DNA from: Laetmonice hystrix
Lineage: Eukaryota
Reading direction: 5' to 3'
NCBI GenBank assembly: GCA_965235115.1
Contig: OZ249451.1
Span: 5,890,001 to 5,954,000 of the forward strand
DNA: 64,000 nt
Shown here piece by piece: positions 4-55,848 of this stretch. The translations under genes and the position numbers were made by a program. The notes below the pieces were generated by a model. That model was not told the DNA's origin and ran no database searches. It saw only the letters and a program-made list of their open reading frames with translations. The number at the start of each line of letters is the position of its first letter. Positions within the stretch are counted from its first letter, which is position 1.

Positions 4-3000
4 ACTGGTTGATAAACCGGCGTCACTGCCAACAGCAATGGCAGGGGGCAGCACTTGAAATCCGTGAAAAGATCAATAATGCCATACAAGACATGCCGCC
101 TGTGGAAGAAATCACACAGCTTCTTCAAGGAACATGTAAGTTTAAGGGAGCAATCTTTTATATCCAGGCTCGTGAAAGTATACATGTATAAAAGAAATGA
201 AAGAATATCAAAGGGTACATTCTACTTTTAGTAAAGATGGCTTATGAGTTGGACCAATTGTAATTCAAGGGTAAATCTACAAGGGTACAATATAGACTGG
301 GAAAGTATATTTTTTCAAGACATCAACTATTAAAGAGATAATATTGTTAGCTAGAGATAATATTATTGTCGGCTCATATCTAATTTATCTCATTCTACAG
401 AAGTAATTTTCTTTGACATGATTTTTTTCTACCAACACAGATATCAATTACTTTCACTGTTTGCGTATCTTGGAACTTCTAAAGGATACAGAATCTGGAT
501 CAAAAAATATATTTGGAAGATATAGCTCACAGCGAATGAAGGTGAAGTATTTACATAAATAAGATTCCCCCTTTTAAGGTAGACAGTATTGAAATGAGAA
601 TTTGTCATACTCATAAACTAGTGTTTTGTGACCATGAGGCATTACTTCCAAGGATAGCTTTTCGAGTTAGAAATTAAAAGAAAAGTAGCATTAGAAACTG
701 AAGGTTAAGTGGAGAATAATTTGCTCGTGTCGCATATATTGTATCTCCTTTGTATATTGCAGGATTGGCAGGAAGTTGGCAAGTTGTATGAAAAAAATGG
801 TCTATACCTAGGTTAGTGTAAAAGGAAAGGAAATTTGGAATAACTTGAAAAGATTGGATATTGGAATTGAAAATTGTAATTTCAGCTTTGGGTGCCAAGG
901 AACTACCAGTTTGTCTCATCCCCTGAACCTCAATTGTGCTACATTTGTATTTAAAAACTGCCTGACTCCTGATCAGGCGTCATTCAAGGGATATGACTTT
1001 CAAGTAGTGATACCAAATATCTAAATTACAGAGCTTAACCTATTGCCATTAATTTTATTGTGTCTACGCTCCAGAACCTACCAGATATTGGTGTAAACAT
1101 GAAAAAAAGCTTGTTAATTCTAAAAATTGAACTGCATCAAATGTTTTTTTTCTTTCAGCGGAGGCAGCACAGCTGTTGATGAGGAATGTCAACTATGAAA
1201 TCCCATCTTTGAAAAGACAATTAAACAGATGTCAGCAAGCTCAAAAAGTTTGTATCTGGTAACAAGCTCCATTCTAATAAAGAGAATCTTAAACAGACCT
1301 TTACTTGAAGATATTAGGATATTACTTTATTAAACGTTTTGTAAGGAAAAAAATGCTAAATAATCTTGTTTATTTAGGAGCATTATAATCAAATTTTTTT
1401 ATGTAGAATTCAGGAAATTATACAAATCTCTGATTTGTAGGACTGCACACGGAAAGAGGGAGAATATTGTTCTAGTGCAAGTGAACTCCGAGAAAGATTT
1501 ACGTCATCTTGTAAAATGATGGGCATTGAGGTATTGTGAGATTATTATCATCTCGAAAAACTTTAGTACTGATATGCTTGAGAATAACTTTATAAGTTGG
1601 TTTTGGTATTTGTTATGAGGGACAGGTTCTGAAATATTTTTGTTTTAAATCCCCCATTGATTAAGGCAGACATTAACATGGATATATATATTCTGTACAC
1701 AGTAATTGCATCATCGGAGAGCTTTTTTTTTCATTCCTCTTTGTAGGGAAAGAAACCAAAAGTGGAGTTGTTGGCTCTTGTGAAGGACATGCCAGTGACC
1801 TTTGACCTTATAGGGAGACAAGCATCTGGACTGAGGCCATCAATAGACTACTACACCGGTTTCTTAGAATTCACCCTTCAAAGGTTAGCAGGTGTTTGTA
1901 GAGATTGTAAACTTAACGTAATACTGACAATATAAACTTGATACCCATAAAATTCAACTCTTTGAAAGGGGTGAGTTTTAATTATGCCTCTCTTGTTACC
2001 ATAGCAACCATTGGCAAAATTTCAGCCATTGTTGTTCAAGTCTCATGATGTAGCCATAGTTTTACCTTTTCAAAAGACTAGTTTTTTGTTTATTTGTTCT
2101 TTTTGAAAAAATCTTTTTCCACACATGTGTATCCTTGTCAGAAATGATGTAAAAGGTTCACGACATTCTTTGTTTCCCACAGAAAAGATTTGACTTCTGA
2201 ATGCATACCACTATTGAGATTCATCAGTACCCATGGCAACACCACAACATACGAGTACAGGACTGGGAAGGCTCCAACATCTATTGTCGAACCAACCTTG
2301 AACTTGAGCATGGATGATACTGACATAGTAGAAAACGCTGCTGAGGTAAAAATCAAGACATGCTGGACCTATCATTTAACTTCATTGCCAGGTTTTTAGT
2401 GAGTTTCACATGACTAAAGCATCATAGCAAATGTTTCTATATTGTTTGATTTCTAAATGCCACTCCTCAATGTAAAAGTACCCAGCCGTCCCAGGAATTG
2501 AAGTATTTTGATGCTGTTATAGATTGACTGGGGTGACTCTGGGTCAGAGAGTATTGACTTTGGCATCAGTGCCGAAGACAGCGGAGATGGGATTGATTAT
2601 GGAGAAGTCGATGCTGGAGGCGATATTGACTGGGGTAAAGAGATCGAGACAATGCCAGACGACATGGGGGTCGTTGTCATCGAACCTGAATCCTCATTAA
2701 AAGGTGTGTCACATCATCGTTAGTTTGTTTTGTTTCCCAAGCCAAATGATATTAATGAAAAGTGGCTATCAAGGTTATAGTCAAGGGTTTGATTACTGAT
2801 ATTGAGCTTTGAAAGTAAGATTTAAAAATATATTCAGTGTAAAGCAGAAGACTTACTATAACATTGGTAATCATCTCAAGTAAAAATCTTATTTGAATAA
2901 GTATTAGTAAAATTTGAAGCCTGAGGAAAATTCTAGATTGTTGGAAGTCTTTTTGTTTAAAATTACTGAATTGTAACAGACACTGATGACGGCGTTGCTC

Positions 3001-4486
3001 GTGGCAACGATGCCTTGACAATCCTTGACAACCCAACACTGAGGAGCATGTTCCTAGATGAGCTCATGGAGGTGAGAAAATGGACTTCAGCATGTTCGAC
3101 TATATCAAATACTTTTTGTGAACTGAGTTACATATATCAGCAATGTTCTGCCACTGAAACTGTTACTGTTAAAAATATCAATGAGTTTGATTATATCATC
3201 ATTCCATACTTACAGTAGCCATTCCTATCTATATCTGAGAGTTAGTTTAAGAAAATGCCAGTGTCAGTTGCTTTCATTCAGATTGTGGTTGAAGCTTTAG
3301 GTAATTTTATATCTTGCCAATATTGTTACAGTGACACTTTGGCAACATTAAATACCTGTGGTATGATTAGTCTTAGAAAGATGGGTCTCTAAACAATACT
3401 TTTTTTTTCGTATCGGCCAGGTGGAGGCTTTCCTATTTCAACGTTTGTCGGAAATGCAAGCTGCTCCTGATGTCATAGTCAGCAGCCAACTTCAGGCCGC
3501 CCCCCAACAGCTCGACATGAGCGAGGATGACATTCAGACAAAACTGAAGGATGTACGAGACATCCTCTCTCAGTTCACGACAAAACGCATGAAGGATCTG
3601 CTGCACATTAGAAGCTCCCCAAGGTATGAAGTTCTGACACTGACACTAAAAGGTGTCAATATTATATAAAGACACATGCTAATAAATACAGTGTTATCCA
3701 GTCACCTTCAGAAATGCCAGGGAATACTCCAGTGTGCCTTATATTAACTGACTGAATGAGTCATAGGAGTCTGAACGTGGCAGGCTGTCCGTTATTGGGT
3801 TTTAAAGGGATTTAGAAAGTATGCAGATAAACAAAGCCCAAAACAACTAGTCGTGTCTCAATAATAGCTCAGATGTGTATGAATTCGATGACCAAGGTGC
3901 AGTCCAGTATAAGAATATAATTGTGTCAATGTATCTATAAGCACAATGACAGCAATTATAAACCAATGTCTGACTGTTTTATTGTATGTCGTACAGACAT
4001 GTGGAACGCCTGGCTGGCTCGCTCAGTAAGAACCTTGATGATGCTGAAAAGATGATGGCGAGATCACGTCTGATGGCCACCAGACGGAGCGAGGCGCTAG
4101 AGGAGGAGAAGGGACTGGAGCCAACGTTAGATCTCATCAAAAAACGGACAATAGAGTTAAAACAACAGGTGAATACTCTACTATACCTGTACACTGCCAG
4201 CCTTTCTGAGGGCCTTTCATACTAAATTAGATTATTTTTCATTATCGTCACTTTTCTATGATTTCATAATCATTTGTGGCTTTCATTAATTCCTGCATTT
4301 TTAATTTTCCATTCCACGGTCTTACAAAATATTGTTAGTTAAGTCCTGTGTTTATGCAACTGTACTTTCCACAAAATTGAAAAATAATAAAATGAACCTT
4401 TTTTGACTTTGCAGATTGAAGGTGAAATTTCCAAGAAATACAAGGATCGCAGAGTGAATATAATGGGAGAAATCAATACAATATAA
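4..4486 (+). CDS. CDK5RAP3: CDK5 regulatory subunit-associated protein 3 (C53, UFM1-pathway/ER-phagy adaptor); 5' part lies outside the window
   Basis: 12 phase-consistent GT-AG exons: 4-135, 441-541, 763-811, 1159-1247, 1441-1530, 1747-1883, 2183-2345, 2523-2703, 2980-3071, 3421-3623, 3997-4168, 4415-4486 (TAA). Translation includes DWLINRRHC...IREKINNAIQDMP, YINYFHCLRILELLK...KNIFGRYSSQRMKDWQE, RNVNYEIPSLK, IDWG motifs and EISKKYKDRRVNIMG, matching CDK5RAP3 as I recall it. Confidence 0.97.
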
Positions 4487-5209
4487 TCGAGGTTCACAAT
4501 CATCGGAATGGGAAGCTGTAGTATTACATATGTTAAAATATATAGGCTGCATAAAAAACTGTATGGGCATTTTACACACGCGACCCCAAATATGTATTCT
4601 TTTTACATGTATGCTAATGTTTACTGCAGAAAATGTGGTGTTTTAATGTATGTGATTATGTACCTGTATAATTTTTGTAATGTCCTTTAAGGCATTGATA
4701 CGTGGATATGGGGCTTTGCAATGATAAATCATTATAGGTGGACAGGTAGCAATACCTATCACACTACTCGAATATATTATAATATACTGACACTTTCAAA
4801 CCAGTTCAATAGGACTATACACAGTGACTGGGGAGTGAGAAATATATCAATACAGATCGACCAAATGACACTAAGGGATGAACATGGATACTACGCTACT
4901 GTACTTTAAAATCATTCCAGATACCGGTATCATTTTGTTATGAAAATTAATGTGAATGGAAGAAGTGACAAGTTTGACGCTGACAAGTGCTGGGGTGTCG
5001 AAAGCTATTGATAGTTGGCCGGGGAGGGGGGGGGGGCAAGCTGAGGGGAAGCCTATGCCTTGACGATATAGTCCATATAGATCTATGTACCCTGATATAG
5101 GGGTGGATCTATTCCCCGGTATGTACCCCCCCCCCCCCACCCTTTTCGGACACCCTTGAGTGTAGCCTACACTTATTTGTGAATACCTGGTATGGTATGC
5201 CAATTCAGA

Positions 5210-5215
5210 AATAAA
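5210..5215 (+). terminator. Candidate polyadenylation signal of CDK5RAP3
   Basis: AATAAA about 720 nt after the stop codon, followed by a T/G-rich stretch. Confidence 0.4.
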
Positions 5216-5730
5216 GTTGTTGACATGTTCTCTTTGCTTTTGTTTATTTTCTTACATGTTGAGTCATAGATCTATACAACCCAGGGTCAGTCTAGTTCTA
5301 TACTTGATTAAATAAATTAGAAAGGTCTTGATTAAAAGCAGATCGTATATAGATATGCTCTGAATTTGGAGATATTTATGCGTGATATATTTAATTAACT
5401 TTAGGGGAGGAAACTCGACTTGATTTGATGATATGACCATCTGAGTCGTCAGGTTTTTTATTCTTCTAGTGTTAGGCCTAGTTCTCGCCTTTTTCTTCGC
5501 CCCTTCCCCTGTTAATTTTATCGTTTGGAGGAAGGCATGATCTCCCAACATTCCCTTATCACCGTCCTTATGAACGTCACAGTCCTGTAAGCCTGGCAAT
5601 AAATACATAAATTTCTTGACCCAGCTGTGAAAGGTGTGGTTCTGAGTGTTTTACACAGTACCGGACGGTGGCTCCCCCTGTGTGTGATTGCAGTCTGACA
5701 TTCCACGTTTTGTCCCCACCACGCACATTT

Positions 5731-5740
5731 CCGCCATCTT
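5731..5740 (+). promoter_or_regulatory. YY1-type motif in the CpG-richer promoter/leader of the TFCP2-like gene
   Basis: CCGCCATCTT matches the YY1 consensus CCGCCATNTT, about 390 nt upstream of the first in-frame ATG. Confidence 0.4.
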
Positions 5741-6122
5741 GCACATTGTGTGTTGTTTACGTCGAGAAAGGAATTACAGGGACATCAACAATTTCGCCCA
5801 TTGCTCGAAGACAGGGCACGTCGGGTCTGGAGAGTCGGTTTAAGATGAGTTCGGGGGTTGTCCCCTTTTATCAGGGGCACACAGGGGTGGTGTGAGAGGC
5901 GTGGATGGTGAGGAGGAGGGCGTAGTTTCCATCGTCCGTGGAGCGTCAGCGAGGACCGACCGACTGTCCGTCCTTCACCCCCCGGCAGGCCGCAGCCCGC
6001 CCGCCCGCCGCCGGGGCCTGTGTCGCAGCAGCAGCAGCAGAGTGGCATCTCATCCTCATCCTCATCCTCCCCTACCGTCAATCATACCCCAACACGACCA
6101 TCACCAAACACAACATTCGGGC

Positions 6123-9100
6123 ATGTCCGATCTGTCGTTTTCGCTAGCGTCTCCTCAGAATCTTAAGTCCTACTTCACCATGACGCACAGTCTATCCTCG
6201 TGGTTGAATAACATCAAGTCGGATGACATTGATGGTGGCTTGGCTGCTGACTTCGATGGTTCGCTGTCGGGGTTGGGCGTGGAGCTGGGGAGCTCTACCT
6301 ACAATATGAGGTTTGTAAACAACCCCCCCCCCCGACCCCACCAAAAAAAACACCAAAAAACAATAGATCTATTAAAACCCTTATGCCTTAAATTAATTAT
6401 TGCTTGAACTGAGTTGAAGATAACAAGTTTACAAAATAATATGAAAAAAATTGATCCAGACATGAAGAATTTTAATGAAACTGCTCTCATGGCCAGGAAA
6501 CAAAACGGCATGTTCGTGATAAAAATAAACAATACAGTAGTCGGTACAGGACTGGAGCATCATATGATGGCATATATGCCGAGACGCTACATCTTTTCCC
6601 TGCTGTGACTTGACCCAACTGCTCTGCCGAGCATTTTTGAGCTACATCCCTTTACGGAACATTAGTTGCAAACATTGCCCTAAGCTAAACTATATTAAAT
6701 TCATTTTAAGCTAAGAAGAACATTTGACAGTTGCATTAGATTTTCTGTGACAGTCTGAGCACAATTTACAGTCCCTGGTCTAAACTCTACATGTTAATTA
6801 TTTGCACACCAAAAAATGAATTTGCTTATAAAAATTCAGTGGTTACCACAAAAAACAAATAAGTTGGAACTAACGAAGCTAGAGGAGGCCCTGAAATTTA
6901 GCTGAATGTCTGTTAAGTTTAATCATAGATCAACAGTCAAAGTGTAGTGTATGAGGGGAAAATACTTTAGGCAAAATTTATTTTGTGTGCATACCTGACA
7001 CTGACAGTAGATCAAGATATACGACAGGCATTTAATAAAGGTCAGTTCAAGTCTTTCCATTAAAAGGAATTGCAATATGTGGTATAATATATTGTTCATT
7101 GTCCATCTTCTGGGTGCAGTGATAGGGTTTGTCCTTGAAGGGTCATTGTTGTAAAGTCGAGGTGATGACACCAAGCCATGTGACTTGCTGTGGTTTGAAC
7201 TTTCCCGAGTTGTAGGCCGACTGATGGTCGCCTTAACCCTGGTGGTTTGTCCTGTAAGTGGTTTCTGATAACTTTATCACTACTGTCAACATAGGCACAG
7301 CTACGTCACCTTCTACCTACATGGTTGGTAAGATTCTGCATCAAAATGGAAATATTTGACCTTGATGTGGATAAGATAAGATAAGTACTGACTGATACTG
7401 ATAGCACATTCCTTTAAGTCTCTGTTTTCAGAAGACAGCTGCATTTAAAAAGATTTTTTTTAAACACTTTAAAAAGTCAATTGACACCCAAGGCTTGAAA
7501 TAAGTGGTATCGCATCGCAGTTTGCAATCCAGAATTCACGTTTTACAATACATAACAGATATAACAGATTTGAGGGCGGTAGGTTTTTTCTAATACAGTG
7601 AAGATATGTTGGTTTTATTTCTTACAGTGAAGCGCTGCTCGCTCTTCCGGTGTTCAAACAGGAAAGTCTCGAGGCAGGGTAGGTAGTGTGCAAAAGTTGA
7701 GTTTTGTAATGTCGCAACATTGAAAAAAGTCCGTAAAGAATCCTTCCCACTGCTGTAAACAGAGTTTGAACAATCTAGCATAAATTTCTGTTCATCTGAG
7801 ATTGCTTATGTAGAGTTCATGTAGAAGCTAAGATGTAAATCTTAGCTTGAAGTTAGTTTGAAGCACCAACATGTTTTTCAGAGATGAGTGTGAAAATGCT
7901 TGCCATTCTGACGATGTGCGTGCAACAACGCCGAGCGGCGAATCAACAACCTTCTCCGTTGAACTCATGCAGGGAGCGCTTGTCGTCAGTTCTGAAAACA
8001 ATAGGTTTGTATGAAGAATTCTTGTTTCCTTTGTTTTTTCGATAACTGAATATAATTAGCTTTTGGCCAATAGTAAGAATGAGACAGTAAAGTGACAACT
8101 GACTGAAGTTATTGCAACATGAACTGTTGCAGCAGTCTTCTTTCACTTTTTTTACAGCAAAGGCTGTGAATATATTGGCATGTATGAACCACAGTACATA
8201 TTTCAGAGCTGGTGTGTCCATATGTGTTATGTTTGATATAAATCATTTTTATTGAAAAGACTCATGAGGGGCATTAAGCCTGCTGTACACTCACGACTTT
8301 GTCCAACTTTGAGTTGGGAACCAGTTAGGAGGGCACACCAAAATCGTAGCCAATTAAAAAAATAAATGAGGAACCAAGCAGCTTGGCTGCAGTTAACCAA
8401 AATCAGGAGTGTGCTTGCTTTCTGATTATGGCCAACTGTTGTCGGCTTTCTTGGGCCCTTATAGTCAGTTGGGAGAGTGCCTGGCAGTCAGTCAGGAGTT
8501 TGGCGAAGTCGTGAGTGTTTTACAGATGCTGAATGGAACAGCAACAAGTAGGAAAAGTGTGAAAGTGTGACTTAAAGTAACATTATTGACCAAATGATTT
8601 ATAGCAAAGGTCACTCCTTGAAAAGGTGGACTGTTAAAAAAGGAAGTATCATGACTGAATCTACTGGGTATAATAATAACAAATAGAATGCATATCAGCA
8701 GGGGTCTTCAGTTTTATATTAGGGTTACAAATACCTAACTCTCACGAATTATTCTACAAATTATCCCACCCAATTCTTTCTCATTATCCATAAAGGTATC
8801 TGGTTTGAGTTTTAAAAATATCAGGAAGTATAATATCAATGATTGGCACTACTGCCATCCAATCATCCGTGAGGTAAGTGGTGAGGTATGTCAGGGTTGA
8901 GAACAGTACAATATACAATCAAGGTAACGTTAAACTCGTATCAGGGTGATCAGAGGCAGAATCAACACGAGAGCTTCTCTTATGCACTGCAATGCTATAA
9001 AGAATGCACCTTACCAAAATGCTCTGCTCTCAACAGGAATTTTTTTTGTAATTTTTTTTATCTTGATTTGTATGAAATCTTGCAGTAAATTTTTATTTCT

Positions 9101-12100
9101 CAATTATACTCTGCCTAAACTTAAAATTAAAATTGCAAGAAAATAGAGCACAGAAATTGGTCATCAGCATCCGGCAGATGTTATGCTTCTAGTTCCTATG
9201 CAGGTTTACTATTATGTAGCATCAAAACTGTCTCAACTAGCACATATTTATTAGAGCTATGCAAGCATATATAGCTAAAAATCTGTCTGAATGTAACACA
9301 CGTAATGGGAGAATGGCCCTGCAGAAAGTGTTCTTTCTCACTGATCAAATCCTGTATAAACTTGATGATTGGTATGGGATAAGTATACAAAGGATAAAAA
9401 TGCTGTGGGGGATGAGGAGGTCGTGGCCCAAGTTTCTTACTTGAACTTGAGTTGAAATTTACAGCTCAAGCTCCAGAGCTCCGTGAGATTGAGCAGTAAA
9501 TTTCACCAGCTCCACCAAGAAGTAGACCCTGATCCAATGCTGTATTTGACTCGCTGGTAGCACATGCTCTCCATATTTGCTGTTTGACAGTATGGATTAT
9601 GTAAACATAAGGGTGTGCCGTTGTGTCTTCTAGTCAAGCATCTATCAATAATAAAAAGTAGGTCAGCTTTGTTTTCAAACATAAAAGTAGCTATTGTGAT
9701 ACGGTATCAGATTCAGATAAGTATCAGGGCTTGGTTTCTTGGTAGAGATGAGTCAAATTCACAGCTAAAGCACATGTGCTGGTAGTTTCAGCAAAATTTG
9801 GCTGGTGAGTTTAAGCAGTAAATTTCAACTCAAGCTCTAGAAAGAAACCTAACGATAATACAGACTGAGTCTAAAATTAAGATGACTGTAATTGTGAGTA
9901 TGTTATAAAGTGAACAAGATGCTAGGTATGATTTTTTTATATAGCCATAGTATGATTTTGAGTGTTAAATCTAGCTCACCTTATTTGTAAAAATATGGCT
10001 GAAACAGCAATCCATGGAAAATGTTTTGCTTGAGCGTTATGTGGTTAATTTATTACTTACGATCCAGCATACAACATGATATGTGTAATAACCTTGAATT
10101 GAGATAAAGTGACTCCCAGGTAAAGGGTTGAATACTCTAAAAATGGTAAGTATAAAAATACCAATACGAGAAGGAAAAACAGTAGTGACATCGAGTACAA
10201 GATACAAATATACTAGAGTAATTCCTCAAATGTGGTGGAGGAAATACTGGAAATATAGTTCGCATAGATGCTTTGGTAAACATTGACACATTTTTAACTT
10301 GACCAAGATAATGGCCTGTGTTGATGTATAGATGAGAAGTAGTTAGTGGGCTTTTTAGATGTGGCAACCCAAAAATTGAAGTGACACAAGATATTTGAAC
10401 TTATTGTCGCTCATACAAAATCCTGCCTTTACTACAACGGAACTTAATTTTGGAACATCTCCCAAACTGTTATTAAAAGAACATTTTAGTATTTACATTT
10501 CTCAGGTTGATTTTCCGTCATCGTCGCTTGTTCAAGGCCAAGTGTCATGCGGCATATGATCGTGGTTGTTTTTCTCACTGATAGTCATAGCACACCTGAG
10601 AAAAAAGTTTGCTTTGAGGAGGTGTTATTAAGGACATGTTTTGCTCTTGCTCAGAGAGAGGGGTCAGAACACATATAATATCGGCGAACCTCATTGTGGC
10701 ATCAGTGAGGCAAGTGATTATACCTCGACGGCTGCCTGCTACGTAGCAAAACCCCAGCCCACAAGGTGAGACCAGAACAAGGCCCTGAAAATTAGCTCAG
10801 GCAGACACGCAATATGGTACGGATCAGTTGGGTCGCTAACTGGTACCTGAGGAACACAAGTGTGGGTTGAGTGCGAACGGAATGATGTCATTAGCCACGA
10901 TGGTTGATCACATATTTTATATGGTTTGGTCAGAAAAAGTGATGTGAAAATGTGATTGTGTTCCACCAGGAGACTTACCCCACAACTTGTTTGAGATTAG
11001 CTTGAGACTACTGTACTTGTGCCAGTCTGGACCAAACAACAAGAAAACTTCTGTAGTCATGAGCTAATTCCAAATAAAAGTCATGAGGCTCAGTCTTCTC
11101 GTAAAGCGGGCTGTTATTCAGTCCACTGTAGTATTTTTATGATGCACAAAAACTGCTAGTGCTAATAATAAAATTGGTACTGAATTTTCCAACTTTCTGC
11201 TGATGGATACACTTTTCCTGTATCAACAGCAGAGCAGTATTTGTACAATTGATAACTGGTATTGGGTTTTTTGAAAACCCATCTAAACAACTTAAATACC
11301 GGTACATGTATACCTGGTTATATTTTGATGTTCGGTCCATATGGTCTCAGTTGAAATTGCCAAAAAAGAAATACCAGAAATTGGTGATACTTTATGAATA
11401 CTACCGTTAAATATGTCTGTTAAATATAAACAAATCATAAGACACACTGGTGGATATTTGAGAGTTTGTATTTAGAGGAAGTTACTTGTTATTTTTTCTA
11501 ATTGTGTAACGAATCAATTGGACCATATTGTGACCCCTTTATTGCAATACCAAATGGTATATATATTATGAGAGAGTGTATCATTTAGCTCCCCCCTAAT
11601 GGGAAGTTACACATCCGAGTTGGAATATGTGACACAATGTTCAATGTTTTAACATCCCAGTACTTGTGTAGTATTTTTAAATCTTATGTGGTCCGAGAAA
11701 TTCAGACGCTGGGAAAGATGCAGTCTGTTGCTTGGTCATACAAGTTTATTCTTGAAACTCCCCAACCAGAATCTCAAGGGGCAATGACAACTTGGCTGCA
11801 GAATGAGCTGAAAATTTCAACTGGCAAGTAGCCTGGGACTATTTCTTTGGCAACACTTGTCCCTTTGACATGTACTCAGTACATTTACTAACCTGCGTTT
11901 ATAAGACAAGTCAAGTGTGATCTCAGGTACTGCACGTCATGCAAGAATTTCAAAGTTACTGGTTCAAGTTTATGTGTGAAAGTCCTGAACATACATCATG
12001 GAAATCTGTTTGCGGGTGAGATATCGGTATTTGTTGTAAAGAAATCTAGAGGCGGGAAAAGGGATCCAAGGTCATGTAAAGGGATCCAAGGTCATGTAAC

Positions 12101-15100
12101 GGGATCCAAGGTCATGTAACGGGATCCAAGGTCATGTAACGGGATCCAAGGTCATGTAAAGGGATCCAAGGTCATGTAAAGGGATCCAAGGTCATGTATT
12201 GATAGTTTTCTCATGTATTTTCCAGGTTTCAGTATATACTGGGTGCACCTACTTCACCAGCCACTAAGATGAATGAGGAAACGTTGACTTACTTGAATCA
12301 AGGTAGGATGCATGTTCTCAATAAAAGAAAAGAAAATCTCTAGATTAATTGACTGTAACTGTTCATAATTAGATTTATTAACATGACTAATTGAGTTCTT
12401 TTTTTTTCTTTCAGGCCAGTCTTATGAAATCAAACTTAAAAGATATGGAGAAACCGCAGAGTACGGCAACATAAAGGTAAGTATTAAAGAGTTTATTTTT
12501 CAAATTTTAATTTTTCAGGGGTCGCACCTTTGTCATAGAATCCTCCAGGCCCGGTGTGAAATAAAGTTCGTTCCCCTATACAGTATTTGCAGTTGAATTT
12601 GGAAATACCACGGAATCAAATATAACAGAAATCCTAGCAAAAGAAGACTAAAAAGATACAGAGCATTATCCTGAATTGTAAGGCAAGGATTTAAGACCTT
12701 ATTGTCAATTTGTAATGAATGTTTTTTCAGAGTATTGTCCGAGTGGTGTTCCATGACCGCCGTCTCCAGTACATGGAGTTGGAGCAGCTCCAGTTGTGGA
12801 GACTGGGACGGCCCGGAGAACGATTACTTGACATTGGTTAGTACACCTTACACTGGTTATAGTCACACTCGTAATGCAGTGAGGGTGGCAGGGGTGTTAG
12901 GGTTAAGGTAATGAAATGAGATGGGTTTAGCAAAGTTAAACTTATTGAAAAATTTTCCGCAGTCTGACGAGTCACAAAACGTGTCGAGATTTTCTGAAGC
13001 GGTAATCCTGACTGTGGAAGCACTTGGTGCTGACAAAGCAGAATCAGAAACATCAAATGTCAAGATAATGCCAAGAAAGTATGACTAAGTACCATACTAA
13101 TATCAGGAATTGCCTGGGTGAAACAGACTGAGTCTAACTACGTAGTGTTTTTATTTTCACCGTAGATATACCTTTGTCATCCGGAATCACTGATGTCAAG
13201 GTCGAGTCCAACAAACTCAACTCGGTCTCGTTTCGATGGGACCAGAACAAGGACTGCAGTGTGTATGTGAAGGTAAGTCTTAATATATCGTTCTGATACA
13301 CCTCGTCAAACATGAGTATGAGTTCGGGATATGTGGTAGAAATACCCAGGACATAGAGAGTTATGTCAAGAGCACAGAATGAACTGAAGAAATTGGGTTT
13401 TGCCACATCCATTTTGAGATATTTTTGTGTGGTCTTGTTCTGAAGAAATACCAAACTTTTAATAATTGGAGAATTCTGGAGAGGATACAGCCTCGTTAAA
13501 ACCGTATTAAATAATTATTCAATCTTTCTGTGCCCATCGAACCTCTAATGTGAGGTATTGTAATTTGTGTACTAAAAAAACGCTGAGGGACCTCAAAACT
13601 GGGCTGGATTTTGTAATCTTTCATGTCCGTTTCTCAAGCCAGGGATTTTTCCAGATTCCTGCTTTTTCCGCCAAAAAATTTAACACTCAGTGACCGCTGT
13701 GAATCCGTTTTTTCTCCCTTACCTGATCACACCTGTGATTTCTTCCAGGTGCATTGCATAAGTACAGAATTTACAGCCAAGAAACATGGTGGAGAGAAAG
13801 GTGTGCCGTTCAGGGTACAGGTTGAGACTTATGTTGAGGAGGACGAAGACTCGCGTTTGGTACACTGTGCGTCATGTCAGGTCAAAGTGTTTAAGGTGAG
13901 TCAGAGAACAGTCAGTATAATGGTGAAATTTTGGTATTTTGTGCCACTGTTATATATTAGATGGTTCTTGTTAAACATATTTTCGTTCTTCCTTAATTGT
14001 TCAGTAGTACTTACATGTAAATAAACCATACGTCTAAATGTTGTTTATGTAGAGCCTTTAATTTTTAACATTTTTTTCTTTTCTTATTTCAGCCGAAGGG
14101 AGCAGACAGAAAACAGAAGACTGATAGAGATAAAATGGAAAAACGCTCAGGGTCAGAAAAGGTAAATTTTAATTATTTGTCAAAAAAGGTCAATTTTAGT
14201 TTGTCATAAAAGGTAGTTCATTACTCTGATCTATATAAGGAATTTTTGACGTTCTGACAGTAAAGAATTGTGTCTTTTGCATAAACCAACCGTATGTCTG
14301 ATTTTATGAAGATTGAGATGTCATTGCACATCCTATATTCCTGGCTCGCTGACAGTATCGGTGGAGCCGGGGACACAAGCTAGCTTAATTCACTGCCACA
14401 ATCGGTCACGATCATCAAATGATGCTATACCAGGGTAATACTTTTCAACAATTTTGGGATAATTCACTTTCAAAATATGCAGCAGTGTGCCCCCCCCCCC
14501 CCCACATGAAAAAGAAAGAAGGGTAAAAACATATGGAAATCGTGCAAATACACAGTGCAGAGAAAGTTCATGGTATATTAACCTAAGGGAAATTCCAAAG
14601 GAAACTTTCCAGTGCTTAGATAGAAACCTGTATGACGTTATCAGGTCAATGGACGGTTTATCACTCCTGGGGATACACGGGTCTGCAGGCTCCCTCTAGC
14701 GTCAATATAGCTAACTACCAGTTCCCCATTTTACATTTTCCTATATTGATCTTATTGTAATCATTTATCTTAATTTGAATTAATAGTTGGCAGTTGTAGA
14801 CACTTTAATGTTCCATTAATCACAGGTAAATCATACTTCGAGTCCAAACTTAACGTTTCTGTCATTCAAGGTTCCATCGTCAGGCTGATAAGATTGACTT
14901 TTGCCTCGTCTCACATAGATAAATCTTAACTTGTTGAACTTTATGAAAAGGCAATAATTTTACTAGGCTATTAGGTTCTGTTGGATACAATTTAAATAAA
15001 AAAGCCTTGTATAAAATCACCCTCCATAAAATCATAAAATTAGGACAGCACTGGCATAACATTGGTATGCATACATGTAGGTTTTGAAATTGTGAAAATT

Positions 15101-18100
15101 TTTGTATATATTTATTGACAATCGTGACACTAAGGGCAAGGGTTTAAGTTCTATCCAAACGTTTTTTGTGAGGAAGTACCGAATTGTTCATGACTAAGTG
15201 TTAAAACCCCAGCCCCCCCAATAGATATAGACCATTCTCATCATGGTACACCAGGGTAGCCGGGGAAAAAGAAGGCTCACGAGCAAGGAGGCCAGTACGC
15301 ATGCAAGAAAAAAGAGGACTACTTTATCCCAACATTGTACAACGCTGAATCCGTCATATTTGATAAATGAGGCCGACTTTTTATTGGCCAAGCCGAGTGC
15401 CATTTACCGTGGTGATGTGGCAGTTATCCAAGACAGGTCAATGTGAGATTGGGGCAGGCCAGGGTGGTATCTCTGAGAGGGTCGTCGGGAGGGGTTGGAG
15501 GGGTGGGGGCGGGGGGGGGGGGGCCGGTGGACTGAGGACACAGAACAATGTATTCAGACTGGCACTGTAACAGTGCTGCTGCAACCATCGCAAATTTAAT
15601 AGATGCCGGTATAGATTCAAAATAAAAGTAAAATAGGAAGATTCTCTTGTGTGCAGATTAGGATAAAGTAATGTGCTTTTAGTTGTTTTGCAGGCGCGGA
15701 TCTAGGTTTGCGCCCAGGGGTGCGGTGGGGTGGGGGGTTGTGCATGTTTTGTAGCAAGAAAGAAGAATTACTTTGTAACAGGGGGGGGGGGTAGTAAACA
15801 CCCCCCCCCCCCCCCCCATAATCCGTCACTGTGTTGTGTTTTACTTATAAGTTATTAGGTGAAAAGTTATTAGGTGAAAAGTAAATCTGTAAGATGCAAG
15901 GTTCTTGAAACGCAGAACCATTGAGGAAAATAAACGAAATTGACTCTGTTATAGTACTGACTTCATACACGGCCCATAGCACAATGCTTGCTAACCTATG
16001 GTATTATATCCTGAAAGTTATGTTTCAATACTCCACAGGAGAAAGGAATTTGACTTGTGTTTCAGGATGTATCAGAAAGAATGTGTACTCCATAAATATC
16101 AGCTTAGTTCTCAGTGTTATTGCCTTGGTAGGGGGCCTTTTGGTCACCTCTATGAAATGTCTTAACAAGTTTAATATTAGTACAACAAAAATGTATACAG
16201 TTTGCAAGAATAAGTTGGTGAGGTATTTCCAGGGTCGTGTGCAGGATTTTTTTAGGGGGTTAGACTCAGGCTAAGGGAAGCCGTGCTAGGGGGTCTAGAG
16301 CATGCCGGAAAATTGTGGAATTTAAGGTGTAAATTGGTGGCATCTGGTGCATCTTAGAGCACAAAATAAGGTCTGAAATGGCATGTCAAAAGTGCTAGAA
16401 GGGCTTTTTCATTATCTGGATCAGCTATTTTATAACATGAAATTATAATGTCTTAGTGTTATTGATTTGCATTTAAACAAAGGAACACACAAAAGGGTCA
16501 GCTAGGTCATCATGGTGTTAGGGTTTTATAGATGTCGGGCCTATGCTGACCATGATAAGTAGAGACATGTAGCAAGTCTTGTTATGGCCTTGACATTATA
16601 TGTGAGGGACTAGGGCAAGTCTTGGCAGTGGAGCAGGGCATGGTAGGTCCAATCCAGTTCCCGCTGGTAGAAGCAGCTGTCGATCCCGGAGAATATAAAC
16701 ACGGGAGTGTGCGGGCGGGGGGTGAAGGAGTGTGTGGAGCAGGTCGCCGTCTGGGCAGTGAGTCTGTGACAGTGGACGCAGGGGGCAGGCCGTACTGTTG
16801 CCATAGACCACCAGCCGTTTTAACTGTGGTGTATGTGAGTGAGGAGGGGGATCCCAACCATCACATCCCCCGGGAGTACCGTGGAGGGGAGGCCGGTACT
16901 GGGGCCGTGACGGGCCGTGACGGGCCGTGAGGACGGACGGTGTCGGGAGGTGGAACTTTCCATGGACACTACAAGAAGGTTGGAAAGTTTCCATGGGGCA
17001 GGGGGCCTCTGGACTTGTTAAGTAAATCGGCTCAGGCCATGGATCATGGCGAGATTAAGAAATCAAGTTGGGAGGGTTCATGGAACTGTTTTGGGAAGGG
17101 TCAGTCTCGTGGATCAGTCTGGCAGAAGAGACATGGATCATTTTTGTAGGGTATGGATTCTTGGATCAGTTGGGAGATTTCATGGATCAGTATATAAGAG
17201 CCTACAACATGGATCAGTTGTTAATGGGGTGTCATGGATCAGTTTGGAGCTTTCATGGATCAGTGAATCAGTACAGGAGGAGCTGCGGATCAGTTCGTCA
17301 GATTTTAAGGATCACCTGAGGATTTTCAAGGATCATAATTATTGCCAGGTTTCACATGGATCAGCCCCTGTAGAAATTACATGGATCAGTTGCAGAACCG
17401 TTCTGGATCACTGAGATTGTATGAAAACAAAAGGATTGTGGCCCTTGCACTGACCATCAACCAGTGGAGGTGCATGCTCCCTATTTATTAGGATTTAATT
17501 ATTCTTTAGAAATTGGCGTCATCTAAGTACAGGGACTGTAGATAAGATAATCAAGTCAGAATTAATATATATATTAATTAATGTATATTACAAAGTAGTA
17601 TGATTAATATATAAGCAGCAGGCTGGTATATTACTGGTATCTGAAGAAGCTATAGGAGTGTGGGTGGGTGGGAGCAACTTGACCGGGAAGTGCAGGGGGG
17701 AGGCGGGGGGGGGGGGAGTGCTGGAATAGCTCAGGTGGAGGTCGGCACCTTGGAGTCCTACCCAGCAGGTGAAGCTAGTACACAGTCTGTGACGCTGATG
17801 TGTTGAATTCTTGCTCTTGGTTAAGTGAGGCAAGACTCAGAAACCAGTCAGATCGAGAAATGTTGCCTAGCTGGGTCGGGTCAGGTCAGGTCAGGTCAGG
17901 TCAGGTCAGGCTGGGGCTGCCTGTCTGGCTACATGGTGTTGTTTTCTCATCATTTCAACTCAGCCGAACCTAAAGCAAGCCGGGCATACTTGACTGCTTC
18001 CTGGGCGACTGGGGCTCTCAGACTCTGAGGCCCTTGTAACCAGTAGACTGGTACATAGTATGTGTGGAGATGTATAAGTAAGTCTACACCAACTTTATAT

Positions 18101-49861: not shown

Positions 49862-52800
49862 TCAGTTTGCCCGCTGTCGCTTAGCGTCATACGTTTTCAT
49901 TCTGTCCTCTCTGCCAGCCTCCCACTTCTCCAGGTCATTGGCCTGGAGAAGTATTCTCATCACCTCTCGCATCATACGGTCACAGTCCCCGAACACACGA
50001 CATCCAAGGGGAGACCGCGTCCTTGGGTCTAACTTCTCACACGTCTTGTCCAGGTGAGTGCTTTGTCTGCCCAAAACAAAAGACAAACTCCTTGGTTTCT
50101 TAATACTCTTACGTGAAAACCTAAGTTATGACTGGGAGTGGAAATAAATGACAAAGCATCAAACAATGACATTAAAAATACAAAAATTTCTTATGTGAAT
50201 TTATCATATAGAACAAGTTGCCGTAATGCTATGACACAAATTGTTATCTAGGAATGTCTGTGAATATATAACTATATATATGGCCTACAAATGAATATAA
50301 TGTACAACATGTATACATATATGTAAATGATTTACATATAGAGACCTGCTGCAATGAAATAAAATTACCTGTTGCATATAACAATTCGAAGTGGTCGTTT
50401 ACCCATTTCAACAAGCTCATTGGCCGGCGTGACAGTGAGAGTGGTCCCTAGACATAACATGAGATCGCACGCCTGGCTCTCTGTCACGGCACGGTCGTAT
50501 ATAATGTCCTCCAGATTGTCACGGAAATTAATGATGGTATCCATCAGAAAGCCCTTACAGCCCTGTCAATCAAAAAATTATATTATTTACTTTAGCAATG
50601 GAGACCAAGAGTCCTTACTCACTTGTTAGAAAAAAACTGAAATATAATTTTGCAATGAAGCCCATTGGTATTGTTCTTATTATTATAAAATCTAAAAGAT
50701 TGAAAATCATGTTTTGACACAGGCCTACCTTTTCTTCACACTTCCTCCCAGTCCGGTGACTGAGCCGACACAGATCACACTGTTTGGCATTCCGAGGTTT
50801 CAAAATATCCGTCTTTCCATTGTCCTCCAGCTCCTCAAAGTACAGACTGGCATGGTCGTCGAGGACATAATATGAACGCTCATACCTTTCTGAACATTTC
50901 TCACACTTCTCCAGGAAAACATTGCCATGAAGTTCAGAGATTTTCTCCCCCATGATACCTGCAAGTTTTATACAGTTTTTTTTTTAGTTGGCTCGACTTT
51001 ATTTGGTATTGTCAATTGATGAGGTTTTACAGTCATATATATGGGCAGATATTCTGCAAGCGAGCATTTTCTAAATTTGGGAAAGGGTCATCGTTTTGGC
51101 TGAAAATAAAGTTTCTCAGATGCCTTCAGTACTGGTATGACACACATTTCAGGCACGTCTTTTATTCACATCATGTGAGAAAGACTCCTCTGTGCTCTCA
51201 CTAAATTGTTTCAAAATTTTCAGCAATTTTGGTCTTCAGTGAAAGTGATTGCTAACTGGTTTTGAAGTGTCTGCCAATGAAACCCGACTACAAAGGCTAC
51301 CAGACCCTGACTCAGAGCGACTCCCCAATAGGACGGTCAAGGAAATGATGTCCTACATGAAAATCTATCAAAGCAACAATGAGTACAGCCCATTGTGTAG
51401 AACTGATTACATAGAAAATATTTGTAATACGATCTACTACTTGTAAGTGCAGCAGATACTTACCAGCCAGAGTATGAAGGCCATCCCCATTTTGACTGAT
51501 TACATATTTCAAAAGTCCCATTTCCATCAACTTTGTCAGGGCCTCATGGGTGTAGGTTGGCCGAAGGGACTCGTATGGTACTCCCTCCTCTCCCACCTCG
51601 TCTTTCTTCTCTGGAATCAAGCTATATATACTCACATCTGTATACAAGGTTCAAACTTAAAGTACTATACATATTGATATTTTTTATATTTGCATGAGAC
51701 GGTCATGTTTCAAGGTGTGGGGCATGTGTTCTTTTTTTTACCATCTTCCACAGACTCCTGTGTGCTGAATCTCCTGCGTTTGGCGGGAGATACGTCCACT
51801 TCCTCCCGGCAGGCCATGCAGTCCATATCCACTGCTTCACGATCCTCTGACGTCCATTTCCCACTCTTGCCCCTAAAATCACAATTTTTTTTAATTAATG
51901 TTTTAGATTATGATGAAAACTGCACTTTTGTCAAAATAAACAGTAGAAAATAAACAGGTTGCGCAGCAAATTTCACCAAAAAAATTCAAGCACTTTTCAA
52001 TACCATTTTCTCGAATTTCCAGTACATGCACGCGGCAAAATCTGAGCTTGTATGGTCAATTAATAGGACTGTATTTGACATTAGTCACTGCAGATATGTT
52101 TCTTGTTCATACAATACTTTTTGTGCAAAAATAAAATGACGGAGAATAGCCGACGGCAGTTGCGAGCAGTCAAATTCCCTAAGAATTTGAGACTATATCA
52201 TACCCCAATTTCGTTACTGCCTCCCTCCCACCAAATTCAGGGATAAAATACAGGAATTCAAGCACTTTTCAAGCCAGGCCTGAAAATTCAAGCACTTTTC
52301 AAGTCGCTGCGCACCCTGATAAAAACATGTACATTTATAGCGCGCAGCGCGCGCCGCCGAAGGCGGCGCCGCGAAGCGCTGTTATGGCAACGTACGTAGA
52401 TCTTCTCAACCTCTGCCCGATCCACCAAGCCAACAACTTAAACCGGATGGTAACCGGACCGCAGTCCATGCACGGCGCCATCTTGAATGTCCGAGTTGCG
52501 GGATTTTCTCGATTGTGATTGGTCGAAAAAAATGTCAATTAATGAGAAACTCGTAAAGAATGCAAAAATATTCCAGCTATAGCCTAATTAAATTATGGCT
52601 CCAATGACTGAAGGAGAAATATGGGATCTATACTTTCACCAGCCGATCGCTGTCTGTAAACTACTTTGGCTTGTGCGATTCTCAAAACTAGTTCCCTCAA
52701 ATCCCGCTATGCGCCGCCAGCGCTGAAAGCCCACTTCCGCCGACTGGGACTTCCGGTGTCAACATCCAGTACGACACACCGCCGCTTTGTTTCCGAGTAT

Positions 52801-53813
52801 GATCGTCGGGCTCGATTGGGCTATAGATAGAGTTAGGATTAGTTAAGGTTAGGGTTAGCTCTCAATCATTTCTGTCTGATGAATAGATATTCATACTAGT
52901 CTACCTGTGATCGTTAGGCCGCAGTACCAATCCTTGGACGTAGTCGTTAGAGTTTAACATCCACCTACCACAGCACTAGTGGCGCTACCACACGCTGCGC
53001 GCTCCCTATGTCCCCGACATTTCATATTACTATATCATCTAGTTTTTTTAACAGGATTTTTAGCAGTAGGCTTAATATGCTAACCTGTAGTCTCCTATGC
53101 CTGCTGATGTAGATATACCCGCTCCTGTAAAACAAACACAATGCTCCGATGATCTTATAAGTTCAGCAACCAGCCGACCCTTCTCTCTGATCTCTTTCCA
53201 AGAATCGTGTCTCTCGGCTGTTTCCGACGCCTCTTTGACCATTTCCTTCTCTGTGGCTAACATGGTTCCGGTTTTCTTCCTTCCAGACCGTGTCATCTTC
53301 AGTACATCTTCCCAACAGGCCACATGGAAGCTAGCATCTCCATTTTTAGTCCATGACACAATCAACTTTGCCTTGATTTTTTTCAGTGCAGCTTTGCTGG
53401 GCATCACAGTGCAAACATCGACCCTGGCCACGTCTGGAGGTAAGGGCCCCTGGTGGCACTCACGGTAACTGCATCTCTCAGACTATTAAAACAAGTGAAC
53501 ACATTTTCAGAGTAATTTGTGCAAAGGGGGAAGGCAAGCCCCCCCCCCCCCTTCCTAGTCCAGGAACCACCTACTACCTAGTCCTAGACTCTTGCTTGTT
53601 GAGTACCCCCCCCCCCCCCCCCCATCAATCAATCAACAATGCACTATCAGTGCCACTGATATGGACTGCCACTGCATTGGACTACCAGTCACAACACGAG
53701 ACATCATTACAAGGATTGATTTCACAGTAACAGTGGCTAGAAAAAGTCTTTTAAACTTCAGACGGATCCAAGCTTCTAGTTTATGTACTCACCCCACTTG
53801 TATTCGCCGCCAT
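49862..53813 (-). CDS. Divergent class IV (SIRT6/SIRT7-related) NAD-dependent deacylase with a putative N-terminal zinc finger, 441 aa
   Basis: Seven phase-consistent coding exons on -: 53813-53793, 53482-53085, 51872-51742, 51610-51464, 50958-50729, 50562-50369, 50066-49862 (1326 nt). Motifs FTGAGISTSAGIGDYRG, LRPTYTHEAL, ISQNGDGLH, ELHGNVFLEKCEKC, TGRKCEEKGC, DTIINF, LGTTLTVTPA and VICNRQ. Confidence 0.93.
51955..52318. mobile_element. hAT-like MITE in sirtuin intron
   Basis: CAGGTTGCGCAGC pairs with GCTGCGCACCCTG (12/13), and there are three internal copies of AATTCAAGCACTTTTCAA. An 8-bp target duplication is not cleanly seen. Confidence 0.6.
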
Positions 53814-55136
53814 TGCTGTAAAAACTTGGAAATGGCGAAGTAATGAACCAACTAAATTGGATGTCACAGTGATACTGGCACAAACCGTTAGACGGCGCCA
53901 CTTGTGTCAGCACGGGAGGGTGTTATCGATGACATACAAGTATGCAACATATTAGGTCCCACAACATAACGTCCCACATATGCACAAGGCATAGATTCAC
54001 TTACTTAGACTTTAGAGAAGATGAATTTCAGGGCACACAGCCTACTTCAACCCCTTGGTGGCTGTCGACATTGAGACTTGCCACGTCTCCATTCAAGATT
54101 TAACAAAAATTGACTTTAAATTAATAAAATGATTCAACAAATACACAGTATCAATGTCTACCACAGCACAGAAACCAAGCCTTGACCAGCTGGAAAGAAA
54201 ATAATTAGACAAATAGTAGATAATGAGTTTTCTTCAATTTTTATTGCTGCCCTTCACAACATTCGCTGTAAGAATTTGAAGTCCACACCCATTAGCAGTA
54301 CCAGTAGTTCTTCAATCGAATGTATAAAACTCACAATTTCTAGACTATAACAGCAGATTTGTTAACTGAATTAGAGCACCTAGGCCTATACAATTTTAAC
54401 AGGTATGAACCATTCATACACTTTAAAAATGGCTTATTAAATTTCTGGACCAACCAAAGTTTGGGGTGGATCTCAAAAAGTCAATCATCGATTGTATTTA
54501 AATTTAATAAATAAAACAGCCTTTAATCAGTTCCCTATTGTATCAGTCTTTTAGCAATGTGATGCCTGGACAGGACTTCTAGTAATATTCGTAAAATTCA
54601 CTAAAATAATACAATCTTTTCAACCTCCTTAAATACTGGAAATCTGCATTGAAGCTGCATTAAAAAATGGCCATTCTAACTATAGGCGCCCACAGTGCTG
54701 TTCAAACAAGGCGATACATACTGCCATTAAGCTTATGTAAATTTTTTAAACCAAGACTACAGTATTCCATAAAAACACCATACACGGGTAATACCAGCTG
54801 AATTGGCCCTTTTGAGACTGGAAGCAAGCAAACTTTTGTGATAGTTTCATGCCCCTACAGGTACATTAGAGTCTGCCATGATTCTGATAAAAACAAAACA
54901 AACAAAAAATATCAAGTGTATGAAAATATTCAGTTGAATAGATTCACTATCTTTTATATACATGTATATCACAAGATTCTGAAACTAATCTATTTTTTAA
55001 AATTTACTGAATAAAGATCACTTACTGTCTTCTTGCCAACAATCATGCACTTTCATATATATCTTTAAATATTCACACACATGTAACGCAGTATAGCATA
55101 CAGATTTACAGGTCCATCTATTGAAGCTTGCTGGTG

Positions 55137-55848
55137 TCAGTCTTTTCCATTATGAGATCCTTTGTCACCTTTGTGTACGACAGACTTGTCATGTTTTTTC
55201 TTGTCAAATACATAGTCTTTCAAGAGGGAGTAGGCCATGCCTATTGTTATTGCACCCACTACCATGCCCTGTGCTTTTACACGGAGATGCATTAAAAAAA
55301 TTGAAGTCGACATCTTCCCTCGCTTCTTGAAGGTATATGCTCCCCATGCAATTGTTCCTAGCATTCCAGCAATTCCTGGGAAATAAAAAAGAAATAAAAA
55401 ATGACATTGTTGTGTTGCTGATTATTATCCTAGGTGTGGTAAAACTGATGATCTTCTAAGTTCGATTCAAAAATGGTGAAATGGCTTTAGAATTAACAGA
55501 GCTGACACCTTTGTTATTGTGTTCAAACCATATTATTTTTTCTATTATTAAATATTCTATATATTCTTAAATAAACTCAAAAGTGATTATTAGATGTACC
55601 TAGGAATGCTTGAAAAATAAACAAGTTTTTCAAGGACACATAAATCTCAGGAAATTTGGAATCTTGAATTTTCAGGACACTTCAGATTATCTCCTTGTTA
55701 GGGTTTTTGAACATGAAAATCACAACTTCACCAAAAAATACACACCAATGGGGACAAACGGCGCTTCCTTGGCCTTCTGAATCAGCCGCTGACTATGTGT
55801 TTCCTCAACATAATCATTATTGACTGGCACTCCCCCTGTTGCTGCCAT
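55137..55848 (-). CDS. HIGD1: HIG1 domain family member 1 (hypoxia-inducible mitochondrial inner-membrane protein), 113 aa
   Basis: Exons 55848-55746 (MAATGG..QKAKEAPFVPI) and 55375-55137 (GIAG..STSIFLMHLRVKAQGMVVGAITIGM), matching the HIGD1A motifs KAKEAPFVPVG and HMRVAAQG. Candidate 5' UTR donor GTAAGT at 56796. Confidence 0.95.

Follow-up and report, generated by a model that had tools for sequence, protein, structure and literature searches.

A candidate zinc-binding N-terminal domain specific to the SIR9 family in a class IV sirtuin gene of Laetmonice hystrix

Introduction

What precedes the catalytic core of the sirtuin encoded on the minus strand of contig OZ249451.1 of Laetmonice hystrix (GenBank assembly GCA_965235115.1)? 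The stretch analysed here, hereafter the window, comprises 64,000 nucleotides (positions 5,890,001 to 5,954,000 of the forward strand) and contains a SIR9-type class IV sirtuin gene. Its coding sequence (CDS) extends from 53813 to 49862 in window coordinates, consists of seven exons, encodes 441 amino acids, and is intact and expressed. An initial annotation had read the cysteine- and histidine-bearing segment at its N-terminus as a PARP-type-like zinc finger, by which the enzyme would carry its own sensor of nucleic acids or DNA breaks. Our analysis leads to a different answer: the gene very probably encodes an intact, expressed SIR9 sirtuin with an unnamed, family-specific N-terminal domain of the one-zinc kind, which is not a PARP-type finger.

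SIR9 belongs to a pair of recently recognised class IV sirtuin families that are ancestral to animals and were lost in vertebrates (Gold & Sinclair 2022, Mol Biol Evol, PMC9486876). It was defined in that study by a family-specific insertion of approximately 25 residues in the small zinc module. The study analysed the extracted SIR2 Pfam domain only, and the words "zinc" and "N-terminal" do not occur in it; therefore, the N-terminal domain described here is an addition to the description of the SIR9 family. PMC9486876 was the only paper naming SIR9 found in our literature search.

Conservation and distribution of the N-terminal domain

The reading frame of exon 2 opens at 53482, directly past an in-frame TAG, and its text runs SERCSYRECHQG...ASFHVACWEDVLKMTRSGRKK, also given as SERCSYRECHQGPLPPDVARVDVCTVMPSK…ASFHVACWEDVLKMTRSGRKKTG…, before the start of the sirtuin (…CFTGAGISTSAGIGDYR). 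Joining a proposed exon 1 to this frame numbers the residues of interest as C11, C16, H17, M34, H60, C63, and W64, with RSGRKK at 72–77. The pattern C11-x4-C16(H)...F-H60-x2-C63-W followed by RSGRKK, on which the initial annotation was built, is read in this frame, and its numbering is exact with the proposed exon 1. The parts of the domain are as follows.

53482-53198, minus strand: SIR9 N-terminal domain proper, residues 8-102, delimited by the structure model and a 55-sequence alignment
53473-53456, minus strand: putative zinc knuckle C11-x4-C16 (codons 53471-53473 and 53456-53458)
53404-53402, minus strand: M34, the sole in-frame ATG in exon 2 ahead of the sirtuin core
53329-53312, minus strand: F59-H60-V-A-C63-W64 (H60 at 53324-53326, C63 at 53315-53317)
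53293-53267, minus strand: variable basic loop TRSGRKKTG, residues 71-79, the lowest-confidence block of the model
53251-53198, minus strand: closing helix-strand EKEMVKEASETAERHDSW, residues 85-102, with E, A, T, E, and S nearly invariant

The family profile matches exon 2 with an expectation value (E) of 1.3e-27 over positions 2–94 of 95. In the alignment of 55 N-terminal segments, which follows an exon-2 numbering (C4, C9, H53, and C56 correspond to protein residues C11, C16, H60, and C63), C4, C9, and C56 are invariant, and conservation reaches at least 90% for H53, W44, G48, A50, F52, and W57. The columns of the four putative ligands do not vary across 112 full-length homologues, and neither do those of the catalytic residues. 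The pattern C-x4-C-x(33-46)-H-x2-C[WYF] is found in 105 of 120 homologues, and the remaining 15 are either N-terminally truncated or C-x2-C variants of the knuckle, one of these variants coming from the named sponge Oopsacas. The spacing in the window gene, C-x4-C-x43-H-x2-C, lies within the family range of x33-46 (mode 41–43). The only ligand substitution among the profile hits is in the fragment P0040, in which Asp replaces the conserved His (FDSGCW). As judged from the sequences, the Cys/His pattern is clearly far beyond chance. An R-x-R-x-K-K-like loop is present in subfamily B and missing from the subfamily of the paralogue described below.

A second gene with the same module lies on another chromosome (L002, G000:C4:29251381-29254638, 1486-1836, plus strand) and represents a second SIR9 subfamily, without the basic loop. 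It reads MAAQMHCHLRKCIQG…FHDICWKA…DNPY, is 41% identical over the segment, and keeps the four ligands. The paralogue starts with MAAQMHC, and its ATG is contiguous with the knuckle, without an intervening intron. The intron position differs from that of the window gene because the first coding exon of L002 ends inside FTG|AG.

A two-sequence profile was compared with 1.84 billion representative proteins and gave 95 hits, 92 of which were genuine. All 92 are SIR9-type sirtuin N-termini or exon-sized fragments, and no other architecture was among them; at least 76 hits run on into the conserved helix and 72 into the sirtuin start FTG(AG). The three remaining long hits (an ankyrin protein, an FN3-like protein, and another repeat protein) are spurious, since only their repeated LH..C- or W-containing motifs match. 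A candidate on contig C2 of the genome (L003/L008, E 0.8–3) contains stops and was set aside as a chance match. No NCBIfam model matches the domain, Pfam has no model for it, a profile search of PDB sequences gave no hits at E up to 10, and a feature-based search of a protein atlas gave no usable match.

The same N-terminal domain was also seen on sirtuins P0069 and P0093 from the eukprot collection (Euglena gracilis and Ploeotia vitrea) and on the unnamed AlphaFold DB entry A0A7S2SQH5. Unless they reflect contamination, the euglenid entries would extend the fusion past the holozoan range of SIR9. A further homologue, a 506-residue SIR9 protein with a long N-terminal extension, comes from an intronless gene in a metagenome-type assembly (L009, 10001-11521; 472-kb contig of ENA ERZ25072196) and belongs to a species-rich clade of ENA-only sequences.

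Assignment to the SIR9 family

Sequence comparison indicates that the window gene is an ordinary member of the known, little-studied SIR9 family, of which the N-terminal domain is an undescribed part. The insertion encoded in exon 5, RYERSYYVLDDHASLYFEELEDNGKTDILKPRNAKQCDLCRL, corresponds to that of Crassostrea SIR9, RYERTFYVMDDAGSQYFEDIEDYGKSEVKKPRHAKRCDTCGL (supplementary Fig. S4 of PMC9486876), and the Crassostrea and Mizuhopecten rows of that figure align residue for residue with the window sequence. Family and window gene have in common the insertion motif RYER..Y.(L/M)DD…(F/Y)(F/Y)E(E/D)(L/I)ED.GK…KP…C..C.L. The homologues of the window gene also share the taxon range of SIR9 (molluscs, Capitella, and sponges); those with names come from many molluscs, Capitella teleta, and the sponges Amphimedon, Dysidea, and Oopsacas. 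In the databases they are labelled "Sirt6-like" or "SRT1-like", and PF02146 is assigned to all of them and PF26652 additionally to one. The best homologues are 51–55% identical over the whole length.

The sirtuin motifs GAGIS, QNxDxLH, and HG and both CxxC pairs are present and form invariant columns in the 112 full-length sequences. Of the five exon pieces scanned, four match Pfam SIR2, each under the gathering score. The closest full-length homologue, P0107 (54% identical), was modelled by AlphaFold2 (AF2) with a predicted local distance difference test (pLDDT) score of 90.3 and a predicted template modelling (pTM) score of 0.88. The best match of the catalytic core of this model is human SIRT6 (E 7.6e-24, 30% identity, template modelling score by target 0.77–0.79), for which structures of the enzyme (PDB 3PKI and 3K35) and of nucleosome complexes (8F86 and 8G57) are available. 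In human SIRT6 the N-terminal extension is short and has no Cys/His ligands, and SIR9 differs from this enzyme by an extra zinc-type domain of approximately 95 residues, an acidic disordered loop, and the insertion of approximately 25 residues in the small domain. The loop equivalent to the acidic insert of exon 3 has pLDDT below 50 in the homologue model.

The class IV assignment made in the initial annotation is borne out by the insertion motif and by SIRT6 as the best core match. Its view that the architecture is foreign to vertebrates holds in that vertebrate SIRT6 and SIRT7 lack the module, but the architecture is not unique to this genome: it is the family-wide N-terminus of SIR9.

Predicted structure of the domain

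AF2 applied to the 95-residue segment with the 55-sequence alignment gave a model with pLDDT 92.7 and pTM 0.82. According to its DSSP assignment, the knuckle cysteines (C4 and C9) lie among short N-terminal strands at 2–3 and 6, and the knuckle is followed by a strand, RVDVC, and then a helix. H53 ends the strand 49–53, and C56 is placed in the first turn of the helix 54–65. In a treble clef, two ligands come from a knuckle and two from the end of a strand and the first turn of a helix. The ligand layout of the model is treble-clef-like, and we infer that a Cys3His site of this kind would bind one zinc ion. Conservation of the ligands in homologues and an AlphaFold model of the N-terminus were the checks proposed along with the initial annotation; they gave four invariant columns and a confident fold, respectively.

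The basic stretch is a loop of lower confidence (block pLDDT 79), and the following EKEMVKEAxxTAExHDS forms a helix (76–86) and a strand (90–92) with pLDDT 86–98. Because this helix and strand are confidently predicted, the segment is part of the domain rather than a linker. RSGRKK, previously taken for a basic linker, is a variable loop within the domain and not a tether. Since the pTM of the full-length homologue model is high, the model suggests that the N-terminal domain may be packed on the catalytic core and not tethered to it. When the N-terminal domain (1–97) and the core (98–442) of P0107 were predicted as separate chains, the score was 0.00, with the partner poorly folded without an alignment.

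Gene structure and expression

The assembled seven-exon CDS is open over 441 amino acids. Its exons are listed below.

53813-53793, minus strand: exon 1 (proposed), ATG at 53813, MAANTSG, donor GGG|GTGAGT, phase 0
53482-53085, minus strand: exon 2, zinc-type N-terminal domain and start of the sirtuin Rossmann fold (…FTGAGISTSAGIGDYR)
51872-51742, minus strand: exon 3, GKSGKWT… and acidic disordered insert; RNA joints 51871/53084(+1) and 51610/51742
51610-51464, minus strand: exon 4, …RPTYTHEAL…SQNGDGLH…; RNA joints and Pfam SIR2
50958-50729, minus strand: exon 5, catalytic HG, CxxC…CxxC zinc module, and SIR9-specific insertion; RNA joints
50562-50369, minus strand: exon 6, second half of the Rossmann fold; RNA joints and Pfam SIR2
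50066-49862, minus strand: exon 7, coding part, stop TGA at 49862-49864; the 3' untranslated region (UTR) runs on below 49600

Four sequencing runs of one sample were used, of which run X4 is RNA-type, as judged by its behaviour. A 1520-nt X4 contig skips four sirtuin introns with CT..AC ends, and a separate X4 contig joins 51872 to 53085 (exon 3 to exon 2). These spliced contigs indicate that the gene is expressed and confirm five introns (2–6). RNA contig 25 is unbroken from below 49600 into exon 7. Another X4 contig spans exon 2 from 53240 to 53474, and the codons of C11 and C16 are therefore transcribed.

Upstream of exon 2, 31 phase-0 ATG…GT candidates occur within 1.2 kb, and only MAANTSG has a consensus donor. 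This exon 1 (ATGGCGGCGAATACAAGTGGG|GTGAGT) is located approximately 310 nt upstream of the exon 2 frame, and its start codon has a good context (A at -3, G at +4). The join of exon 1 to exon 2 is plausible; it is a well-motivated model and not an observation, because no X4 RNA contig covers exon 1 or its junction with exon 2. The exon boundary that the initial annotation had placed at 53482 stands as far as the frame, the consensus donor, and the residue numbering go, whereas the junction lacks RNA contig cover. Its remark that the open reading frame (ORF) list truncates the N-terminus is correct, as the listed ORF starts at GTG 53431. When homologues were searched for with the exon 2 peptide, the best identity was 57%, and no transcript-derived N-terminus from the same species was recovered.

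Allelic differences in exon 2 were observed at 53443, 53446, and 53462 in two of the three DNA runs of the sample. Read as codons, the differences at 53443 and 53462 are synonymous (L21 and R14), and that at 53446 gives P20A in a variable loop, so that the ligands are untouched; the RNA contig has the reference alleles at all three positions. Intron 1 contains homopolymer tracts (C12 and C16 on the plus strand, at 53545-53560 and 53607-53623), around which the DNA runs show allelic indels and substitutions. Most of the length of intron 2 (51990-53080) is a high-copy repeat, where the depth of DNA-run contigs is 2,000–18,000, compared with approximately 50 in the flanks, and the contigs are broken into pieces of about 80–120 nt with many loose ends. 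No Rfam family matched introns 1 and 2.

Next upstream on the same strand comes a HIG1-domain gene (55140-55364, minus strand; PF04588, E 2.8e-9) with a probable first exon at 55723-55848 (minus strand). At 54269-54400, RNA-type contigs reach a depth of 587, which points to a highly expressed 3' UTR ending less than 500 nt from the start of the sirtuin.

Comparison with TTC3/DZIP3 and other folds

PF19179 (TTC3/DZIP3) was the only Pfam family matched by more than one member of the SIR9 alignment (3 of 55 at E <1, best E 0.005). The domain of the window gene itself scores 13.2 bits (E 0.078) and does not reach the gathering threshold of 26.9 bits. The highest-probability Foldseek matches in afdb_swissprot are human DZIP3 (252–305) and TTC3 (648–705), and those in afdb_clusters, after SIR9 itself, are unnamed proteins (residues 212–305); the Foldseek probability of matches on the TTC3/DZIP3 side is 0.23–0.47. 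The L. hystrix genome contains a DZIP3/TTC3-like gene (L004, 1507-2258; G000:C19:3216169-3216920), in which a Cys-rich domain is spread over three short exons, CRFESC… / …SCYAQCTIEYHPDCW… / …CFTPDCWSTC…, with the fuller reading CRFESC…VRVSCYAQCTIEYHPDCWKKF…CFTPDCW. These exons were not picked up by the whole-genome scan with the family profile. The alignment of SIR9 with this domain by hhalign has a local probability of 56% (P 1.1e-4, 59 columns) and pairs C-x4-C with C-x4-C and (Y/F)H-x2-CW with the same motif.

TTC3/DZIP3 and SIR9 share the C-x4-C knuckle and a central strand, and the relative spacing of (Y/F)-H-x2-C-W is the same in both. The DZIP3-type domain, which resides in E3 ligases and not in sirtuins, carries an additional C-x3-C pair ahead of the His and an additional C-x4-C pair after it, presumably a second zinc site. 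SIR9 lacks both: an invariant W and G occupy the C-x3-C positions, and a helix takes the place of the last Cys pair. This replacement suggests that, of a cross-brace, SIR9 kept the first zinc site (pairs 1 and 3), while packing took the place of the second. The signal for homology between the two domains is weak but recurrent, and not conclusive. On balance, we lean towards an origin of the domain as a one-zinc remnant of the RING/PHD-like two-zinc domain of TTC3/DZIP3. A literature search on the function of the DZIP3/TTC3 domain gave nothing useful.

The 50 best VIA-align rows (48,161 chains) consist mostly of ZZ, RING, U-box, and p300-RING modules (Z 2.7–3.9). These modules share the layout of knuckle, hairpin, and helix with the SIR9 domain model; ZZ and RING modules hold two zinc ions (U-box none) with eight ligands, whereas the SIR9 domain has four conserved ligands. 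Such neighbours would fit a cross-brace ancestry and prove nothing, and with Z values this low a shared fold cannot be claimed. The PDB contains no significant structure match (Foldseek E >=0.9, VIA Z <=3.9). Significant matches in the AlphaFold DB clusters and the ESM Atlas are SIR9 only, and the Atlas returned the family's own mollusc cluster alone.

Alternative interpretations

Several points weigh against a one-zinc SIR9 domain as described above. The metal site is a prediction from the ligand pattern and the model; docking to the core derives solely from the high pTM of the homologue, the separate-chain prediction being no evidence either way. Similarities outside the family are all weak (VIA Z <=3.9, Foldseek E >0.3), and the 3.0 bits that the SIR9 hidden Markov model (HMM) assigns to the DZIP3-like domain of this genome were reached by 37 of 2000 shuffles. 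The uncovered first junction counts here as well, and it bears on where translation begins. Transcripts could start in or near exon 2 and be translated from M34, in which case the sirtuin would have a crippled N-terminus without zinc; the exon 2 contig ends at 53474, beside an AG (53476-53475) and an out-of-frame ATG (53474-53472), and M34 is the first in-frame ATG after the upstream TAG. The ends of RNAs cannot be read from contigs, and the frame is open over the 26 codons ahead of M34, which fit the family profile, with both invariant Cys, QG, L.P, and ARV(D/E)V. With 24 of the 25 best full-length homologues, the BLAST alignment of the window gene's protein sets in at residues 6–11, at or just before the first Cys; the consensus donor and the good start-codon context are found 310 nt upstream in phase 0. 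The three allelic differences ahead of M34 are, by codon reading, two synonymous changes and P20A, none of which affects a ligand. Starting at M34 would remove two invariant ligands, and the paralogue L002 has no equivalent Met. Because the in-frame sequence upstream of M34 is conserved, translation from M34 only, which the initial annotation had named as a refutation of its reading, is very unlikely.

The nature of the domain is a separate matter. PARP-type fingers (PF00645; fingers F1 and F2 of PARP1, and DNA ligase III) share with the SIR9 domain the ligand order C, C, H, C and an aromatic residue ahead of the His. A basic loop follows the second ligand pair, the C-x2-C variants have a PARP-like spacing of the first pair, and the action of SIRT6 at DNA breaks is established, so that a finger sensing nicks or breaks and bringing the sirtuin to damage is an attractive reading. 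The canonical spacing of PARP-type fingers is C-x2-C-x28-30-H-x2-C, and both the knuckle and the inter-pair distance differ in SIR9, in which the second Cys and the His are separated by 33–46 residues; the initial annotation had itself remarked on this deviation. The PF00645 HMM gave no listed match to the window domain at E up to 10 or to the 55 members at E up to 1, where HMMER filters may hide very weak matches. No finger of PARP1, PARP2, or LIG3 is among the top 50 Foldseek pdb rows listed (E up to 10), nor does one occur in the 50 best VIA-align rows, and the paralogous subfamily does without the basic loop. We find nothing specific in support of a DNA-break sensor and consider a PARP-type finger exceedingly improbable. 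Break sensing is possible only as the general contribution that any chromatin-directed module could make. A broader proposal is that the domain is a general zinc module for RNA, DNA, or nucleosomal DNA and not a protein-recognition module. Many members have the basic R-x-R-x-K-K loop beside the zinc site, and class IV sirtuins act on chromatin. In the abstract of PMC7803555, DZIP3, a possible distant relative, is described as an RNA-binding ligase. The loop, though, is the least conserved and least confidently modelled part of the domain, and the paralogous subfamily does not have it. The invariant surface (RVEVK, W, G-A-FH-CW, and KEA-TAE-DS) is not basic, and the nearest fold neighbours (ZZ, RING, U-box, and PHD-type) mostly bind proteins or peptides. 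We therefore regard general nucleic-acid binding as unlikely.

Functional implications

To our knowledge, no function has been assigned to the SIR9 family. The accessory regions of sirtuins determine where and on what the enzymes act, and the short N-terminus of SIRT6 is required for its chromatin association and activity. For the putative one-zinc domain of SIR9, we favour by analogy a role as a docked targeting module. In the arrangement we propose, the knuckle (C11 and C16), H60 at the end of a strand, and C63 at the start of a helix would together hold one zinc ion. The variable basic loop would come next, and the conserved EKxMVKEAxxTAExHDS helix-strand would then close the domain and lead directly into the first Rossmann helix. 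SIR9 would thereby keep ligand pairs 1 and 3 of TTC3/DZIP3, with the invariant Trp and Gly standing in for pair 2. The module may act as a rigid accessory domain packed on the catalytic core and, like ZZ, PHD, and RING-type modules, may offer a surface for recognition of proteins, histone tails, or chromatin that selects the substrates or the location of the deacylase. The basic loop, which is confined to the subfamily of the window gene, could take part in nuclear import or make contact with a surface that is acidic or formed by nucleic acid.

Taken as a whole, the following picture is tentative, and parts of it may well fail: a new, family-defining zinc domain, absent from Pfam and from solved structures and confined to a single sirtuin family, whose conservation spans sponges to molluscs and possibly euglenids, and which may descend from the first zinc site of TTC3/DZIP3 and would act as the substrate- or chromatin-targeting reader of a class IV sirtuin lost in vertebrates. 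The result sets right the link to PARP-type break sensing, which is attractive but has no support. The domain is a candidate for a new domain-family entry, and its signature recognises SIR9 genes better than the split SIR2 matches of Pfam. It also provides a defined construct for binding assays with zinc, peptides, nucleosomes, and nucleic acids. A rigid, invariant zinc-type domain ahead of the Rossmann fold would be the first concrete handle on the biology of SIR9.

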